The notes under the pieces were generated by a model, which made no database searches, was not told the origin of the DNA, and worked only from the letters and a program-made list of their open reading frames with translations. Of a stretch of DNA of 64,000 nucleotides, positions 16,675 through 63,097 are shown in pieces. The translations under genes were made by a program, and so were the position numbers. The stretch lies in the IMG/VR virus record IMGVR_UViG_3300020172_001601, positions 248,001-312,000 of that record; one strand, 5' to 3'. The first letter of the stretch is position 1, and the number at the start of each line of letters is the position of its first letter.

Positions 16675-17271
16675 CCCAATCCCCTCATGATATTAACACC
16701 AGATGGCATCCTACCAAATCCAGGCAACTTTCCCAGACCAACCCCAGGCTCCGGCAACAAAAGCTCCAAAAACACCCTTTTTTCATGTCGGACGTAAACC
16801 CAATGTGTGAAGGCACTTAGGACACGTTGATGGGAAGTGATGGATTTTAGAGGTAGGAAGGGCCTAGCCAGCCTTTCATTGTGTCCTTTATTCCCCCATA
16901 TCCCCCAGGGAAAAAGTTCCAGAGGCGTATTTGATGAATATTGGAAAGAAAATGTATATCGTTGTGAAGCGATATATGAAAAACAAAAAGAAATGTGTGA
17001 AGGGAAAAGTATCCAAGGGGATCATGATATATTCAGGACCAACTAAGGACACAATAAGGCAACGATATATTTTTCAATATTGAGTTCTAAGGTAACGCTG
17101 CCTTATCTTACCTTTAGTTTTTGTTAGTTGCCCTTGATTGCCTTTTGATTGCCTTCGCTGACTTTGTTGCCTTTTCGTCCTGGATCGCCGCCTTTAGTTG
17201 ACTATTGTTGGCTTTTGGCCATTTAGGTCTATTGTACCCTTGCTTTTAGCCAATGGATGATTGGTGTGCCG

Positions 17272-17308: not shown

Positions 17309-17535
17309 GTTGCATAACGGGTACAAATGAGGTCAGGTCTATTGTACCCTAGCGGGCTGTTCGTATTTTCGGGTTTGGTTGGAGTCAGCGATGGTCACAT
17401 GCTCATATTGTGGTGGCAAAGGATATGACGTAAAGGACGTGCCGGGGACGAGCAAGCAGTGTCCTGTTTGCAAGGGTTCGGGAGAAGTGAAGCGTTAGGT
17501 CTGGTGTACCCTGGGAGTTGTCGGAAGAAATCGAC

Positions 17536-20221: not shown

Positions 20222-20300
20222 TTTGCTCACCAAGGGTACAAATGGGCTGAGGTCTATTGTACCCTAGTCGGCGTCAACGCAACTTTTCAAAGGGAATGAA

Positions 20301-27331: not shown

Positions 27332-27355
27332 GGGGATCGCTTCCTCTTGTGTGGC

Positions 27356-27502
27356 ACGGCGGTACTTTAATGGCAGAAGGCGGCTCCAAGCAAGGTTCGA
27401 GTCCTTCTTAGGCTGGAGTTCTGGAGAGTTAGCTACTCTTTGGACCTCCCCCTTTGCATGGAGTACGGGGCGGCAGTGCGGGTTCGACTCCCGCTCGCTG
27501 TG
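27356..27502 (+). ncRNA. tRNA-like RNA with expanded anticodon domain
   Basis: Acceptor ACGGCGG/TCGCTGT, D-arm CTTT-AATGGCA-GAAG, T-arm GCGGG-TTCGACT-CCCGC; ~95-nt structured middle region. Confidence 0.7.
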
Positions 27503-27561
27503 TTTTTAGGTCTGGTGTACCCTAGTGGGTGTTACGAAACTTTCCTTTTGGAGAACGAACT

Positions 27562-33550: not shown

Positions 33551-33772
33551 ATGAGCATTGAACGACAACTTGTGAAGGGAGTAACGACGACTGATGTTGC
33601 CGAAGTCGTCAAGGTCAATGAGTGCATTCGCTACATTGAATCTTGCGGCTGGTTGTTGAAGCAACGTGCCAGGGGCTATTACTACTTTCGCAACGAAAAC
33701 GCCAATGAAGGTCAGCGAGACATGACTTTTTCCTTGGCAGAACTTCGGGAGGCATACCACAATGGATGGTAA
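33551..33772 (+). CDS. Hypothetical cassette protein
   Basis: GGAG RBS. Confidence 0.65.
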   Translation: MSIERQLVKGVTTTDVAEVVKVNECIRYIESCGWLLKQRARGYYYFRNENANEGQRDMTFSLAELREAYHNGW

Positions 33773-33966
33773 AGTCAAAATAAGTCACAACTATTGGTGG
33801 GAAAACGCAGTGTATTACAGGCGTTCCATCTGCGGCGGCAATATTCAGGTCTGGAACGGTCGAATATGGACTGATGCTGCCGAGTCCTGACTTATACTGA
33901 CTATTGCATACCCTTCTCCATAGGGAGTATGGGGAAGAAAGTCAGGTCTATTGTACCCTAGCCGGT

Positions 33967-34268
33967 GTAATCGCAAATTACAACACCCAGCACGGGTGGA
34001 ACGCCGAGAGCCACAGGAGTAAGCACAGAAAGCATCCTCGCTGCGAAAACAATCGAGGATCGACCCGGAATAAGCCGGTCAGACAGAGTGTGAAGGCAAG
34101 AGGGTAAGCCCCTCCCACAATATATCACTCTGAATCAGTGTGGCCACACTGAGTCTGATCGAACGAAGAAGGGCAGTGCCGAAACGACTGGACGGGCGAA
34201 AGTCAGTCACTTGCTGTTGCACAGTGCATCGAAGACCGAAGGGGACGCCCTTCGGTTTTTCTTTTTTC
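33967..34268 (+). ncRNA. Candidate structured ncRNA (~300 nt)
   Basis: Lies between the motif and a terminator; no convincing ORF; at least 6 hairpins. Confidence 0.55.
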
Positions 34269-34325
34269 ATTTTGTTTAGGTCTATTGTACCCTAGCTGGC
34301 ACAACCCCTAACGAAAGGCAATGCG

Positions 34326-34514
34326 ATGAACGAACAAGAATGGCTGGAAGCATTCAATGCCGAGTTCCTGCGTAAAACCGGCATCACATGGGCAGACGGT
34401 GGGCTGGAAGATCAGGACGCCATCAATCGCTACTTCCCGGAAGACGTGAAAGACGCTGTTCTCCAGCACATGGAGAAATACGACTTGGACGACGTGACCC
34501 AACTGTGGGCATAG
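34326..34514 (+). CDS. Small acidic protein
   Basis: Stop is the motif TAG. Confidence 0.7.
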   Translation: MNEQEWLEAFNAEFLRKTGITWADGGLEDQDAINRYFPEDVKDAVLQHMEKYDLDDVTQLWA

Positions 34515-36269: not shown

Positions 36270-36506
36270 AGAGGATCATTCAGGTCTGTGAGCAGCGGGG
36301 TAACTGGCAGGGAGGCATCCTGTCAGCCTGAATCGAGCGATGGTAAGGGCCAGCGAGGGGGCTGGACATTCGACTGTATTAGGTTCCAGCCCTGATGCGA
36401 CCGAATGCCCCTCGCTGGCACCTGCCTGCATTCAAACCAAGGGTACAAATGACCTTACGTCTATTGTACCCTAGTGGGTGTAACAAACAACAAGAAAAGG
36501 AACACA

Positions 36507-37448: not shown

Positions 37449-37742
37449 ATGCTGACAACTGCGGAACGAATTGAACAAGCGACAGCTTACGGCGTAGGCA
37501 CCAAAGCCTATGTTGACACCTTCGGGGGAATGGTCCCCTGTGTGGTCACGGAAATTCACAAGCCGAACGCCAATGGCATTGTCATCGGCCACGACGAATT
37601 GACCGTGCGAATTGAAGAAACCCGTGGGGGATATACGAAAGGCGAGATCGTCACACGGTCAGCCGCATACACTCCCCCACGAAAGCATCGTATCCTGCGG
37701 GGATACAGCTACCGAATCAACACGGCGTACAAGTACGTCTAG
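37449..37742 (+). CDS. Hypothetical cassette protein
   Basis: AAGGAG RBS; stop lies inside the motif. Confidence 0.75.
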   Translation: MLTTAERIEQATAYGVGTKAYVDTFGGMVPCVVTEIHKPNANGIVIGHDELTVRIEETRGGYTKGEIVTRSAAYTPPRKHRILRGYSYRINTAYKYV

Positions 37743-38146
37743 TGTACCCTACATGGCAACACGGTATGGCTGCTCAAGTGGTGTTGCAGCATTGCTTGAG
37801 CATAACACGAGGAGAGAAAAACCAATGGGCAACTAATTCCCCGATGATGACAAATAGGCGATGCAACAAGCCTTGATCGGACGCAATCGTGCTGCAATAC
37901 GATTGAACAAGACAAGAAACGACTGCAAGACCTTGCTGTTTAGGGGCGACCATACGGAATGTCGCAAAACTTAGCCGTGCCGAATTGGTCAGTGCGCAAA
38001 GCAGAGAAAACCAGCACCAGCTACCACTGGTGAAAGGCATCGGTAGAGCAGGTTGGAGTCCTGCAAATCTGGTTTTCTCTGCTTTGGGCATAGGTCTAGT
38101 GTACCCTAGTGTGTGTAACGAACACTCAACCCTGCGAGACAAGAAC

Positions 38147-38926: not shown

Positions 38927-39157
38927 ATGGCTATTACGCTGACCCCTTCCTATGGTCGTGACTACAAGAACGGCAAAGAAGTCCAAGAAGCCTGGGACGC
39001 TGGCAAGGACTTCACGATCAACTCCATCGGCCACCCGGACGATGGGCGGCAGATCAACAAGCAGGACGCCGAACGTGAGGGCGGCACCTTCAACATCCGG
39101 TACAAAAAACTGACCCAGATCAAGGTCATCAAGGTCAAGAAGGTCGCTGCGGCTTAG
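38927..39157 (+). CDS. Conserved phage hypothetical protein (PxYGRDYK...W..GKDF)
   Basis: GGAG RBS; stop is the motif TAG. Confidence 0.75.
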   Translation: MAITLTPSYGRDYKNGKEVQEAWDAGKDFTINSIGHPDDGRQINKQDAEREGGTFNIRYKKLTQIKVIKVKKVAAA

Positions 39158-39178
39158 GTCCAGTGTACCTTACACAGT

Positions 39179-39435
39179 GTAACGCCTCCCAAACATCGGC
39201 CTTGGGCAAGCCAATCAATCAGAATAAAGGAACCCCTTCCCATGAATGTCTGAAGTCCGCTAACTCCCCGGCGTAGTCATCCACGTTAGAGCGGGGCGGG
39301 ACTGCAAAGCGATGGCCGCACGTCAGCAATGGGCAGCATTGTGCTGGCTGACGTGTGAATGAAGTGCCTCCCAAACATTGGCCTTGGGCAAGCCGAAAGC
39401 AAATGCGTAGGGCAGGACCAACCTGCCCTTTTTTT
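39179..39435 (+). ncRNA. Candidate ncRNA bracketed by two 29-nt direct repeats
   Basis: gcctcccaaacatYggccttgggcaagcc at 39184 and 39366; terminator at 39410-39435. Confidence 0.6.
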
Positions 39436-39490
39436 GTTTTTGTTTGTGTAGGTCTATTGTACCCTAGAGGGTGTAACAAGCGAACAACAT

Positions 39491-39628
39491 GGCGGCGTAG
39501 CTCAACTGGCTAGAGCAACCATCATTATCGTAGCGATTGATCGGGGGTCCACGGTCAATGCGGCCAACGTGTGTACAGCGTTGGTTTGAGAGGATGGGAA
39601 GACGGGGGTTCGATGCCCTCCGCTGTCT
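39491..39628 (+). ncRNA. tRNA-like RNA with ~70-nt insert replacing the anticodon loop
   Basis: GGCGGCG/CGCTGTC acceptor, GCTC-AACTGGCTA-GAGC D-arm, CCATC/GATGG stem, GGGGG-TTCGATG-CCCTC T-arm. Confidence 0.75.
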
Positions 39629-39743
39629 GCTTACACTGTAGGGCATTTGCCCGAACAACGAGGCGTCAGAACACGCCTACAACCCCGAAAGGGGAGAGAG
39701 TGTAAGGTAGCCGTAGTGTACCCTAGTGGGCAGGAGAACAACA

Positions 39744-44996: not shown

Positions 44997-45325
44997 TGAG
45001 CTAGTGTACCCTATGGTGCATAGTGCATAGTGCATAGCATAGACTATGCACTTCTTTATTCAAAGAAGCATAGGGTACAATAGCCCTAACAATGTTGCAT
45101 AATTAAAAACAAAACAATTATTCGAGAAAACATTGGGTACAATAGACCTACCCACCCCCTCCCCCACGCAATGACTGTGTTTTCTTTTTAATGTCCAAAA
45201 GAAAAATCCTGGCCGGGGAAAACAAAAATCGCAAATCGGCAATTTTGAGTATGTCCTGCCACGATTTTGAGTTTTTGTGTGAACTCATCCTGAAAAAATC
45301 GCCGGGGCAAAAATTCTGGCCCTGG

Positions 45326-52775: not shown

Positions 52776-53241
52776 AATCCCAGGGCGGGACGGGATGTTT
52801 ATCGGCCCACAGGCCCAGCTTATGGCTTTTGGCGTATTCTTGTGCCTCGGCCATTTCCGGTGAATGAGAATAATCCGTATAGTGCCATGCCCAGCCTTCC
52901 TCGATCATTTCCTTGTTGATGTACCTGCCATTCAAATAGACCTTGCCGATAACTCGACCATATCGGTCTTTTTTGGTCCATTCCACTTTGACGTATTTGC
53001 CGAATATTTTCTCGCTGAGTGCTTCTTTGGCTTTGGTTCCGAATGGCTGTTTCTTTTCGGGACAGTCGATTTCGGCCAAGCGAACCTTCATTTGAGTTTT
53101 GTCAGGCTGCAATACTGTGATGGTATCGCCATCGGATATGCCTACAACATTCCCTGGGTCGGAAATAGAAAGACATATCCAAATCACTGGAATGAACGAA
53201 AGTATGGCAAGAACATAAACCGTCTTATACAGTTTGCTCAT
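52762..53241 (-). CDS. Thermonuclease (SNase family)
   Basis: DGDTI, VRLAEIDCPE, QPFG, DRYGR, GLW. Confidence 0.92.
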   Translation of the reverse strand: MSKLYKTVYVLAILSFIPVIWICLSISDPGNVVGISDGDTITVLQPDKTQMKVRLAEIDCPEKKQPFGTKAKEALSEKIFGKYVKVEWTKKDRYGRVIGKVYLNGRYINKEMIEEGWAWHYTDYSHSPEMAEAQEYAKSHKLGLWADKHPVPPWDFRKK

Positions 53242-54341
53242 TAGTTGATCCTAACGAAATCACGGCGTCCACATTGAACGACTTGCCCTGATTGCAGCAA
53301 CAATTGTTCATCAAAGACTTTGGTGCCGTCTACTTTGACGGCTCCATCTTTAAGTCTTTGTCGGGCAGCGGTTTTCGAGATATTGCAACAGGCAACTACG
53401 GCACTCAATAGCGAAGAGGCCGGTAGTGTAGGAATATCTGGAGGCAGTTCTTTGTTCTGCACGGTCTTGAGGAAGTGTTCCTGAGCCGCCTGAGCGACTT
53501 GTAGTGTGTGTAGTTGATTCACGATCTCGACGGCAAGAATCTTCTTCTTGTCCATCGGATGAATATCCTCGACTGTGAAATCTACAAATAAAGGGAACCA
53601 TTCCTGCATGACGGCATCAGGAATAGACATGACCTTCCCAAATACGTCATTAGGGTCTTCATCGAAGAAGATGCAGTTGTCCAGGCTCTTGCTCATCTTT
53701 CTGCCATCTGTGCCATTGATGATGGGCATCATGATGCAAGACTGAGGTTTCTGTCCGTTGGCTTCTTGTAGATGCCGGGCGACTTGAAAGTTAAACAATT
53801 GATCCTGCCCGCCGATTTCGATTTCAGATCGGAGGGCAACACTATCCCAGCCTTGGCAGATAGGGACCAAGAGTTCGTGCATACCAATAGATTGCTGATT
53901 GGCAATACGATCTTGGAAGGCGTTACGGCTGGTCATGTGCGAGAGTGTGAACTTTGCCACCTGTTTCATAAAGGTGGGAAGTGTCATCTGATTATGCAGC
54001 CAACCATTTTTACATATGGTCCATTTTCCTGGGGATTCTGGCCCGAAGTTATCGTTGCCAAGTATTTGCTTGATTTGCACGAAGATGGATTCGGCGTTGG
54101 CTTCAACATCATCTTCAGCCAATATTGGCCGGGTTGTATCACGACCAGAAGGGTCGCCGAGTTGGGCTGTGAAAGTTCCCAATACGATTGTGAGTTGATG
54201 CCCTTCTTGCATCATCTTTTTGGCGAGACGTAGCGGCACAAGATGCCCCAAATGCAAACGGGGGAAGGTCGGGTCGATCCCAAACTTCACCCGTTTGCAA
54301 GGGGGCAAATCGGCATTTTCAGGAAATACTTGAAAAGCCAT
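53241..54341 (-). CDS. tyrS: Tyrosyl-tRNA synthetase
   Basis: GIDPT, HLGH, GGQDQ, KMSKS and a C-terminal S4-like domain. Confidence 0.93.
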   Translation of the reverse strand: MAFQVFPENADLPPCKRVKFGIDPTFPRLHLGHLVPLRLAKKMMQEGHQLTIVLGTFTAQLGDPSGRDTTRPILAEDDVEANAESIFVQIKQILGNDNFGPESPGKWTICKNGWLHNQMTLPTFMKQVAKFTLSHMTSRNAFQDRIANQQSIGMHELLVPICQGWDSVALRSEIEIGGQDQLFNFQVARHLQEANGQKPQSCIMMPIINGTDGRKMSKSLDNCIFFDEDPNDVFGKVMSIPDAVMQEWFPLFVDFTVEDIHPMDKKKILAVEIVNQLHTLQVAQAAQEHFLKTVQNKELPPDIPTLPASSLLSAVVACCNISKTAARQRLKDGAVKVDGTKVFDEQLLLQSGQVVQCGRRDFVRIN

Positions 54342-58297: not shown

Positions 58298-59914
58298 TTA
58301 TTCGTCGTCTTCTGGTGATGGAGAACCTGAAGGAGCGGCGGGTTTGCCGCCACCACTCTTCAGCTTGTTCAGACTGTCCTTCCAACGCTGAGTTGAAAGA
58401 TTTCGTTTGACGGAATCGAACTCGCTGCCTTGTGGCGCACGTCCCAGGAACTTCGTATATTCTGGGTTGACGGTTCTTTTGCCATCAGCACCCTGCGAAT
58501 ATGGTGTCAAATCTTTGTCGTCATGAGCTAAGAAGTTATCGACTTCTGGACCGTGAGCTTTGGCCATCTGCATCCATTCACGAATCTTGCTCTTGGTCAA
58601 ACCTGTGTGTGCAGATTTCATGTCATAGAAGTCTTTAGGGTCGAACTTGTTCTTGGCTCCCCACTGATACAGCTTAACCAAATAAGCAATATCTCCAGAC
58701 TCTTGCTTGGACCAACCGCCACCAGTCAACATTTTCTTGACATCTTCTGGATCGTTATTGCGAAGAACCCAGGCCGGAGCCAACCAACGGTCGCCTCGGA
58801 AGTCTTCTGGCATTTGTTCTGGGTCAAAGTCAACACCTGGGAAAACACTATTGAGCAAACCAGTATTCTGGAATGCCTTCATGTATTTGCGAGGATCGCT
58901 ATCTGGATGTTCCAGACCGCTAAGGAATTCCTTACGAACTGTGTCCTTATCGACGCCATTCATGTCTTTGTGACGGGAGATAGATGCTTGATACTTTTCA
59001 GGAATCTTGTCGGAATTGCCATATCGTGTGACCATCTTCATATATCGCAGAGCGGTAGATGGGTCTTCTGACATGCGGGATTCCAGGTCGTCGCCAACAG
59101 CCTTAACTTCACCATTCTTCAAATGGTGAGCGCCACCGTGCGGGTCGATCAAGTCGCTATTGTCACCGTCCGCAGTCGTCAGCGGGATGTATAGTGAGTT
59201 AATCGTAAAGTCACGATTGGCTGAATCTTCTTCCACGGATGCGGCTGATTCACCCTTGTCAGGCTGAACTCGGCGGCTCTTAGAAGACTTAGAAAGGGTG
59301 GCAATAGAGAATTGTTCGCCGTTGATTTCGGCGGTTACTTCCAATTCTTTGCCTTGTTTGTCCCAGCGAGAAGCGTAGAAAATCTTGTTCTTAGTGCCTG
59401 GAGATGGAAGTTTTGCATATCTCTCGTCGCTGGCGTAGTCTCCTTCACGGGGCTTCGTTTCGGAAAACTGCGTTTCTAGCTGAGTCAGAATCATACGCAT
59501 TTCACTTGGCGTAGCATCTGTAACCAGATCGTAGTTACGAGGGGTCTTGCCCTTCAAATGGTCACGAACGGCACCACCTGTGAGGTACAATACCTTCTTT
59601 TTGAGGTTTGGCTCAACTTCACCCTTGGACTTATCAATCGTGGTGTAGCCTACTCCCACGTTCTGGGAGTCGGCAAATGCCTTGATAAGCACTCTAAGGT
59701 TAGGGTGCGTGGTTTTATTGATGGTAAACGGTGCGAATTCCTTGGAGCCTTCCTTCTTCTGCAATTTAATGCGTGAAGTGATGTTTCCGGCTCCTGGTTG
59801 ACCGCTACTACCGCTACTACCGCTGCCACCATTTCCACCGCTGGCCTCGCCTTCACTTGGCTTGGCTCCGGTTTCTTCTCTTAACTGAAAGTAACTTGCG
59901 AATAACTTTTTCAT
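58298..59914 (-). CDS. tRNA nucleotidyltransferase / poly(A) polymerase family protein
   Basis: GGAVRDHL, (N)YDLVTDA, RDFTINSL, EDP..ALR; first catalytic Asp appears to be Asn. Confidence 0.85.
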   Translation of the reverse strand: MKKLFASYFQLREETGAKPSEGEASGGNGGSGSSGSSGQPGAGNITSRIKLQKKEGSKEFAPFTINKTTHPNLRVLIKAFADSQNVGVGYTTIDKSKGEVEPNLKKKVLYLTGGAVRDHLKGKTPRNYDLVTDATPSEMRMILTQLETQFSETKPREGDYASDERYAKLPSPGTKNKIFYASRWDKQGKELEVTAEINGEQFSIATLSKSSKSRRVQPDKGESAASVEEDSANRDFTINSLYIPLTTADGDNSDLIDPHGGAHHLKNGEVKAVGDDLESRMSEDPSTALRYMKMVTRYGNSDKIPEKYQASISRHKDMNGVDKDTVRKEFLSGLEHPDSDPRKYMKAFQNTGLLNSVFPGVDFDPEQMPEDFRGDRWLAPAWVLRNNDPEDVKKMLTGGGWSKQESGDIAYLVKLYQWGAKNKFDPKDFYDMKSAHTGLTKSKIREWMQMAKAHGPEVDNFLAHDDKDLTPYSQGADGKRTVNPEYTKFLGRAPQGSEFDSVKRNLSTQRWKDSLNKLKSGGGKPAAPSGSPSPEDDE

Positions 59915-62367: not shown

Positions 62368-62849
62368 TGGCTATTCAATTTCTTGAATTCGTTGACCGTA
62401 AGCAGCGTGAGGGCAAAAAGCATCTCAAGTTGATCGAGCGTCTTCTGCGTAAGGGCGGGATGCAAGTCTATGCTCACCTAGAAGACGAAGAACAGCCCTA
62501 TGTCTTTGTCAAGGCTCCTAATGAGAAGTTGAGCTTTGATGGAATTCGTGTTTACGAAATTGGCGAAATGATTGCCTATCGTATTCAGAAGGAAGAGAAG
62601 ACCCACCCGTTTGGTAAGGCTTATATGTTAGACATTGAAGATATGTTTAACGATTTCATGTCTGAGAACATGGAAGAGGAAGAAGCAGGACAGAAAGTCA
62701 TTGAAAGCGTGGTTGAAGAACTGAAGAAGTTCTTTACCAAGAGTGGTAAGGCAGAGCAAGAGATGCGAGATAGCGGGGCAGATGGCAGTGGTTTGATTAT
62801 CAAGACAGGCGGCAACGATTATGCAAGCTCAGTCTTAAACCGTGCCTAA
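62361..62849 (+). CDS. Hypothetical protein
   Basis: Coupled ORF. Confidence 0.65.
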   Translation: MLMAIQFLEFVDRKQREGKKHLKLIERLLRKGGMQVYAHLEDEEQPYVFVKAPNEKLSFDGIRVYEIGEMIAYRIQKEEKTHPFGKAYMLDIEDMFNDFMSENMEEEEAGQKVIESVVEELKKFFTKSGKAEQEMRDSGADGSGLIIKTGGNDYASSVLNRA

Positions 62850-62890
62850 TTTGCATATATAAGGTGTCTCTTTACCACATGGAGGTTTCA

Positions 62891-63097
62891 ATGGACGACA
62901 ATAACGAAGTACAGAAACAAGACGTGCAAATTGATGAGACGAGCCTCATCGCTCTCATCCTAGCTTTCTTTCTGCCACCTTTGGGTGTAGCGTTGAAGGA
63001 TGGGCTGGGCAGTAGCTTTATCATCAACTGCCTGTTGACCCTGCTAGGGTTTTTCCCAGGCATCATTCACGCTCTGTTCGTGATCTTGAGAAAGTAA
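62891..63097 (+). CDS. YqaE/Pmp3 family small membrane protein
   Basis: ILAFFLPPLGV...INCLLTLLGFFPGIIHAL. Confidence 0.9.
   Translation: MDDNNEVQKQDVQIDETSLIALILAFFLPPLGVALKDGLGSSFIINCLLTLLGFFPGIIHALFVILRK

Follow-up and report, generated by a model that had tools for sequence, protein, structure and literature searches.

Does a stretch of about 300 nt without a conserved reading frame, lying between small genes of a giant bacteriophage, encode an RNA, and if so of what kind? Huge phages carry many translation- and RNA-related genes, but very few of their non-coding RNAs have been described. The sequence analysed here (hereafter 'the window') is a stretch of 64,000 nt, bases 248001-312000 of the 340,341-bp IMG/VR virus record IMGVR_UViG_3300020172_001601, which CheckV rates 69% complete. 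The record has 52 tRNA genes, two of them with anticodon CUA, at least three sigma-70-family ORFs and a Ro60-like ORF, and the flanks of the window carry a class I aminoacyl-tRNA synthetase and a PolyA_pol-head (CCA-adding/poly(A) polymerase type) enzyme. It is therefore a huge phage, and one relative contig is 602 kb long. On comparative evidence alone, without transcript data, we conclude that the locus is very probably a genuine gene, on the + strand, for a structured non-coding RNA of about 295 nt from a previously uncatalogued family.

The locus lies in an unusual island. Between window positions 17225 and 45150, the G+C content is higher than in the flanks (0.50-0.55 against 0.45-0.48), and nearly every small + strand gene is preceded by a roughly 19-nt motif, (T)AGGTC(Y)A(K)TGTACCCTAG. 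We found 40 matches at up to 3 mismatches, against 0 expected, and 59 + strand copies at up to 4 mismatches, with none elsewhere in the genome. The copies lie 20-75 nt before start codons and fall into two classes: thirteen 'TATTGT' copies mark operon starts, nine of them directly following a hairpin plus T-run, whereas the 'CCAGTGT' copies sit directly on the stop codon of the previous ORF. In some cassettes the ATG lies only 5-10 nt after CCCTAG, so transcription must begin inside or just after the motif, which suits a single-block, phage-specific promoter rather than a two-hexamer sigma-70 promoter. That the motif is a promoter is nevertheless an inference from its position and repetition. 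T7-type units offer a parallel, with a single conserved block of about 20 bp directly upstream of the start, repeated many times on one strand, with lineage-specific upstream bases, an invariant core and a G-rich initial transcribed sequence; CCCTATAGGG/CCCTAGAGGG resembles CACTATAGGG. However, the island has about 60 copies in 28 kb, nearly one per gene, no T7-like single-subunit or Rpb2-like multisubunit polymerase was found in the incomplete record (no PF00940 or PF00562 hits), and three to four sigma-70-family ORFs are present instead. An integron-type cassette array was rejected, as the repeat is a 19-nt block upstream of genes rather than an imperfect palindrome of attC type, and the 276-aa ORF beside the island has no Pfam hit. 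The island also contains several other conserved non-coding cassettes and tRNA genes with inserts.

Within this island, the locus forms a unit of its own, from an operon-start copy of the motif to an intrinsic terminator, with another motif copy following (Table 1). The initial annotation, which proposed a novel structured ncRNA with its own promoter and terminator, listed hairpins, a perfect palindrome, a terminator and an ORF, and all of these are present in the sequence. The stretch folds better than expected by chance, with a minimum free energy of -102.6 kcal/mol against -85.8 +/- 4.9 for dinucleotide shuffles (z = -3.4).

Table 1 Features of the RNA locus and its homologues (window coordinates unless a locus or 'genome' is given)
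Feature	Position	Strand	Sequence or partner	Evidence
67-aa TTG ORF	33904-34107			Starts upstream of the motif; not conserved
Promoter-like motif, 'TATTGT' class	33944-33961	+	AGGTCTATTGTACCCTAG	Exact copy of the island motif; in every homologue, that lineage's own version with invariant core TGTACCCT at the same distance; promoter function inferred
Initiating region (inferred)	about 33962-33967	+
P1 hairpin	33966-33971 / 33977-33982	+	TGTAAT / ATTACA, loop CGCAA	Partial support; replaced by UUGUU/AACAA in L031, weakened in L020, L030 and L034; loop motif CGMAA conserved
P2 hairpin	33984-33998	+	CACCC / GGGTG	Paired in 8 of 9 sequences; by eye, L034 reads CCCC/GGGG (A:U to C:G)
P3	34002-34005 / 34195-34198	+	CGCC / GGCG	Pair 45:254 is G:C in 2 sequences, G.U in 1 and A:U in 4
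P4	34011-34013 / 34189-34191	+	CCA / TGG	Double changes in all 3 pairs (C:G to U:A, C:G to A:U, A:U to G:C)
J4/5	34014-34022	+	CAGGAGTAA, unpaired, facing J5/4 in a 9x9 internal loop	Conserved columns; role inferred
J5/4	34180-34188	+	CGAAACGAC
P5	34023-34026 / 34176-34179	+	GCAC / GTGC	100% paired; GCAU/AUGC in 3 sequences, UCAC/GUGA in 1 and U.G in 3
P6 hairpin, variable length	34034-34040 / 34054-34060	+	ATCCTCG / CGAGGAT	Double changes in 3 of 5 pairs; a 14-nt deletion in L020 removes exactly the tip and leaves a shorter hairpin
Hairpin of the initial annotation	34062-34080		GACC(C)GG / CCGGTC	Not kept in relatives; bases belong to P7 and P8
P7	34064-34066 / 34171-34173	+	CCC / GGG	Double changes in 2 of 3 pairs; by eye, CGAG/CUCG in L031, CGGG/CCCG in L040, CCCGG/CCGGG in L034
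Peripheral domain	34075-34162	+		32 predicted pairs in the 4 close relatives, 5 with double changes; different helices in more distant homologues
P8 (10 bp)	34075-34084 / 34153-34162	+
P9	34084-34090 / 34126-34132	+	CAGAGTG / CACTCTG
P9a	34100-34104 / 34110-34114	+		G:C becomes A:U in L036
P10	34135-34152	+	perfect 18-nt palindrome	A:U becomes G.U in L036
Hairpin of the initial annotation	34186-34208		GACTG...CAGTC	Not kept in relatives; bases belong to the J4/3-P3' segment
P11 hairpin	34208-34226	+	CACT...AGTG	Fourth pair U:A in 4 sequences and C:G in 5; other pairs invariant
Terminator call	34231-34260	+	13 pairs including 6 G-C, tail CTTTTTTCAT	Terminator scan
Terminator stem (9 bp)	34235-34243 / 34248-34256	+	ACCGAAGGG/CCCTTCGGT, followed by TTTTTCTTTTTT; apex GGGGACGCCC	Double changes in 4 of 9 stem pairs; apex invariant; found in all homologues by the 3'-domain covariance model
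T-run	34256-34268	+
Next motif copy, 'TATTGT' class	34278
RNA in the record	genome 281967-282268
Ro60-like gene	genome 104332-106077			vWA_Ro60 at 59 bits, TROVE at 21.6 bits
Homologue	L019:4434-4735
Homologue	L020:11010-11297
Homologue	L036:10893-11182
Homologue	L034:18197-18454
Homologue	L040:3605-3876
Homologue	L030:11141-11414
Homologue	L031:4049-4324
Homologue	L076:4764-5034

To ask whether the locus is conserved, we scanned IMG/VR and JGI metagenomes with the promoter 18-mers and RNA anchor patterns, which returned only two other contigs. One carries a 99% identical copy (locus L019; L numbers denote loci on relative contigs), and the other an 83% identical copy with a motif whose upstream half differs (TAGTGTCAGTGTACCCTAG). 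The 16-nt palindrome core gave 6 unrelated chance contigs, and a blastn search of a phage database found no match. The neighbouring 201-aa protein has more than 100 relatives in public assemblies. We retrieved contigs for twelve of them, and iterated nhmmer then found the RNA in L036, L034, L030, L031 (= L032), L040 (= L041) and L076 (= L075, and L077 in part). The family thus spans eight distinct lineages, seven in addition to that of the window, at 54-99% identity to the window copy. Each copy ends in the hairpin plus T-run and is followed by a further motif copy. The RNA is absent from four related loci that keep the neighbouring gene (L037, L038, L039 and L074), both by sequence profile and by a 91-position covariance model of the 3' domain, which found all known homologues and none in these loci or in L078 or L079.

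Comparison of the homologues supports a conserved fold. RNAalifold on 8 sequences predicted 49 pairs, 22 of them with compensatory double changes, including helices that join the 5' and 3' conserved halves. We fixed a conservative core of 37 pairs on a 9-sequence alignment, comprising P2 to P7, P11 and the terminator stem. On this core, 97.0% of cells are standard pairs against 89.3% in shuffles, 16 pairs carry double changes against 7.9 in shuffles, and none of 500 shuffles reaches the observed values, although there are only eight distinct sequences and the shuffle control does not remove phylogenetic signal. Sliding the partners by 1-3 columns drops pairing to 30-45%. P3 and P4 slip register in L030 and L031, and P7 slips in L036. 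In the resulting model, three nested long-range helices (P3, P4 and P5) clamp the conserved halves together around purine-rich internal loops, a three-way junction is formed with P6 and P7, and P7 carries a peripheral domain that differs between lineages and covaries in the close relatives. Two of the seven hairpins of the initial annotation, gacc.gg/ccggtc and gactg/cagtc, are probably not the native pairings, and the long-range helices had been missed.

The palindrome raised the alternative of a DNA-level element, such as a replication origin, a packaging or recombination site or an operator cluster, in which palindromes would be protein-binding sites. P10 is indeed a perfect 18-bp palindrome with no loop, and promoter-only units may mark origins in some phages, such as T7 and T4. 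However, the core contains 15 G.U cells against 4 A.C cells, showing that helices are kept through G.U intermediates that would be A.C mismatches on the other strand; this favours the + strand, as do the motif and the terminator. In addition, the long-range helices are 170-190 nt apart and covary, and the palindrome becomes imperfect in L036 in a G.U-compatible way and is absent from the distant homologues. We consider a DNA element very unlikely.

A decayed or very small protein-coding cassette is less likely still. Mechanical ORFs of 41-67 aa overlap the region, and the 67-aa ORF, presented as the only one in the initial annotation, is accompanied by a 51-aa GTG ORF on the + strand and ORFs of 46-63 aa on the - strand. 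None is shared in frame or position among the homologues, the window copy has no ATG on the + strand, and L031 has no - strand ORF of 25 aa or more. Indels between the window and L020 (14 nt, 2 nt and three single-base ones) are not multiples of three. The RNA is far better conserved than synonymous sites of the neighbouring gene: RNA identity against third-codon-position identity of the adjacent gene is 90.2% against 57.7% (window vs L020) and 79.4% against 43.2% (window vs L036), and in L019 the RNA is 99% identical although the adjacent protein is only 92% identical. Conservation exceeds that of codon positions 1 and 2 of the neighbouring gene in places, and follows helices rather than codons. 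Compared with L030 and L031, L036 has the closer RNA but the more distant protein; the cassettes therefore recombine independently, which fits the different cassette order in L020.

We next asked whether the fold could act in cis, as a riboswitch or attenuator whose terminator gates read-through into downstream cassettes. A large conserved fold does lie immediately before a terminator, and most island cassettes lack terminators, so read-through matters there. However, the gene immediately downstream belongs to at least five unrelated families among 8 loci, a fresh operon-start motif follows the terminator within 10-25 nt in every lineage, and no alternative anti-terminator pairing is conserved. 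A 13-nt resemblance to the T-box sequence (GGGUGGAACGCCG) occurs only in the window-type copies, lies at the 5' end rather than next to the terminator and is lost in 5 of 9 homologues; there is no RF00230 hit, and the downstream genes are unrelated small ORFs. A cis-acting leader is thus improbable. A functional link to neighbouring genes is also not supported: the 201-aa gene was the bait used to retrieve the loci, so its co-occurrence is biased, the 143-aa family downstream is missing from 3 RNA-bearing loci and present in an RNA-less one, and island proteins gave no informative Pfam, PHROG or PDB hits.

The RNA matches no family catalogued in Rfam 15. None of the 4227 Rfam 15 models matched at gathering thresholds in the window or at the RNA in seven homologue loci, where only tRNAs were found, and only noise appeared at E up to 10 over 33700-34500. 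A scan of one genome from each of 185,579 prokaryote species with a 3'-end pattern gave 29 hits, mostly from GC-rich taxa, none of which scored beyond the pattern itself with the family profile, and no cellular counterpart was found. A literature search for the motif string and for ncRNAs of huge phages found nothing relevant. Orphan structured RNAs of phages and metagenomes, such as GOLLD, ROOL and HEARO, appear comparable in being phage-borne, with complex covarying folds in tRNA-rich genomes and no function evident from context, but GOLLD and ROOL are probably longer than this RNA, which has its own phage-type promoter motif and an intrinsic terminator. There is no sequence or fold relation to the phi29 prohead RNA, which belongs to small podoviruses and is 120-174 nt long.

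The function of the RNA is unknown, and the modes of action considered here are inferred from its architecture. The unit appears insulated, the core is conserved, and the purine-rich internal loops, chiefly CAGGAGUAA facing CGAAACGAC but also AAUAAG, are invariant, as is the terminator apex. This architecture is that of RNAs that bind proteins, probably including SRP RNA, 6S RNA, Y RNA and RNase P RNA. We therefore rank first, tentatively, a trans-acting protein-binding scaffold or decoy (an RNP component) using the invariant loops and apex; the explanation as a whole, a stand-alone ncRNA gene acting in trans, is held with moderate confidence. If the RNA proves to be a decoy or RNP component, it would show a new way in which giant phages take over or protect RNA metabolism in their hosts.

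Two other modes are unlikely. In a base-pairing regulatory RNA, a conserved single-stranded segment, such as the Shine-Dalgarno-like AGGAGUAAG of J4/5 or AAUAAG, would pair with host or phage mRNAs or with the 16S rRNA 3' end, the rest of the fold only stabilizing the molecule. A stand-alone unit with an intrinsic terminator is found in many sRNAs, and conserved unpaired purine-rich stretches are present, but at about 270-300 nt with at least 8 conserved helices the RNA is far more elaborate than a seed-carrying sRNA needs, and the candidate seed AGGAGUAA is changed in L030 and L031, although no target could be tested because the host is unknown. A ribozyme, self-cleaving or acting on phage RNAs, is somewhat less likely. 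A conserved multi-helix core with invariant junction nucleotides and a variable periphery recalls large ribozymes, and the tRNA inserts of about 60 nt in the same island must be removed somehow. However, no ribozyme family in Rfam 15 matched even at E up to 10 on a short query, no known catalytic motif was recognized, and there is no positional link to the insert-bearing tRNAs.

It is possible, though slightly less likely than not, that the RNA founds a megaphage-specific class, made from the phage's own promoter system, that either mimics that promoter or another nucleic-acid ligand to capture a host or phage protein, such as RNA polymerase with a sigma factor, or serves as the missing RNA partner of a phage protein, for example the Ro60-like protein. 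On this reading, it would be one of several unknown ncRNA genes in a promoter-per-gene cassette island that shuffles between phages. No known Y RNA lies beside the Ro60-like gene, and the window copy contains GGCGAAAG, which fits the YrlA motif GNCGAAN0-1G (PMC4201824), but the fit occurs only in the window-type copies and the motif's C is U in 7 of 9 homologues. Y RNAs are 80-130 nt, have a long stem holding the Ro60 site, lie within 4 kb of the Ro60 gene on the same strand and carry a tRNA-like domain (PMC4201824), whereas this RNA is 178 kb away, ends in a terminator hairpin rather than a 5'/3' stem and shows no T-arm or D-arm that we could see. The Y RNA reading was therefore rejected.

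The 6S RNA reading was also rejected. A rod-like series of helices (P3-P4-P5-P7-P8) interrupted by conserved internal loops, in a phage encoding its own sigma factors, resembles this polymerase-sequestering promoter mimic, but there is no RF00013 hit, the two ends do not form the closing stem, the largest internal loop is small (9x9), and the RNA is about 100 nt longer than 6S RNA, a rod of about 180 nt with a large central bubble. Nevertheless, P2 and the bases after it (ACACCC-UGAC-GGGUGUGAC in most homologues) resemble the motif core plus its usual initial transcribed sequence (GUACCC-UAGU-GGGUGUGAC), with 14 of 20 bases identical, which could be a mimic of the promoter or a relic of one.

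The structured RNA lies within a 28-kb island of higher G+C, in which the motif (T)AGGTC(Y)A(K)TGTACCCTAG occurs in 59 + strand and 3 - strand copies, about one per small gene. The copies fall into two classes, TATTGT after terminators and CCAGTGT on stop codons. Relatives keep TGTACCCT but have their own upstream half, and the cassette order differs between relatives. Inverted copies of the motif core (aagggtacaaat) were found just upstream of some operon-start motifs, and two full - strand copies lie at the right end of the island; these may be divergent promoters or boundary elements. At least three sigma-70-family ORFs of 183, 235 and 319 aa are encoded elsewhere in the genome and are candidates for the factor that reads the TGTACCCTAG motif. 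Just upstream of the motif copy that precedes the RNA, we noted a 10-bp hairpin without a T-run, which is kept, with changes, in the syntenic relatives but is absent in the related locus L034, where the RNA sits elsewhere, and which probably belongs to the 3′ end of the upstream cassette.

Features of the motif island and of the rest of the virus record (G000:C1), with strand where assigned; L020 is a related contig carrying the RNA and L080 is the locus containing the Ro60-like ORF
Coordinates	Strand	Feature
window 17225-45150		Motif island
window 17320-17335, 20235-20249, 36440-36456, 45069-45149		Inverted copies of the motif core and full - strand motif copies
window 27332-27507 (homologous stretch L020:4390-4535)		Non-coding tail of a cassette
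window 33913-33937		Hairpin upstream of the RNA's motif
window 37735-38091		Cassette without a credible ORF
window 39156-39449		Cassette without an ORF
window 39450-39708 (tRNA model hit at 39491-39628)		tRNA-like gene with insert
window 53241-54341	-	Class I (Trp/Tyr-type) aminoacyl-tRNA synthetase
window 58298-59914	-	Protein with a PolyA_pol head domain
genome G000:C1:48055-48513, 62531-62962, 156410-156523		Sigma-70-family ORFs
genome G000:C1:104332-106077 (L080:637-2382)		Ro60-like ORF
genome G000:C1:182011-182084 and 182708-182778		tRNA genes with anticodon CUA

The island also contains other non-coding cassettes and insert-bearing tRNAs. A tRNA-like gene with an insert of about 62 nt in the anticodon arm scored 32.5 bits against Rfam tRNA (cut-off 29), although ARAGORN called it only with relaxed settings and introns allowed. 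This gene is conserved in L020 and in the related loci L076, L036, L031, L039 and L037, and its insert is too short for a group I intron. The non-coding tail of one cassette has two T-arm-like strings, and the homologous stretch of L020 scores as a tRNA (36.6 bits) spread over 146 nt, so it is another insert-bearing tRNA. A 357-nt cassette has D-arm-like and T-arm-like strings at its two ends and a T-run, and is conserved in L020, L036 and L037, with no Rfam match; it may be a second unknown ncRNA. A further cassette of 294 nt contains two copies of a unit of about 30 nt, ends in a terminator and is conserved in L020.

A 581-aa ORF with the Ro60 vWA domain (59 bits) and a weak TROVE match (21.6 bits) is a phage Ro60/Rsr homologue, and no known Y RNA lies in the 3.2 kb around it. 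Within the window, the protein with the PolyA_pol head domain is of the CCA-adding enzyme or poly(A) polymerase type. Finally, two tRNA genes are of the amber suppressor type (labelled Pyl by ARAGORN) in a phage with 50 other tRNAs, which may point to TAG reassignment in part of the genome.
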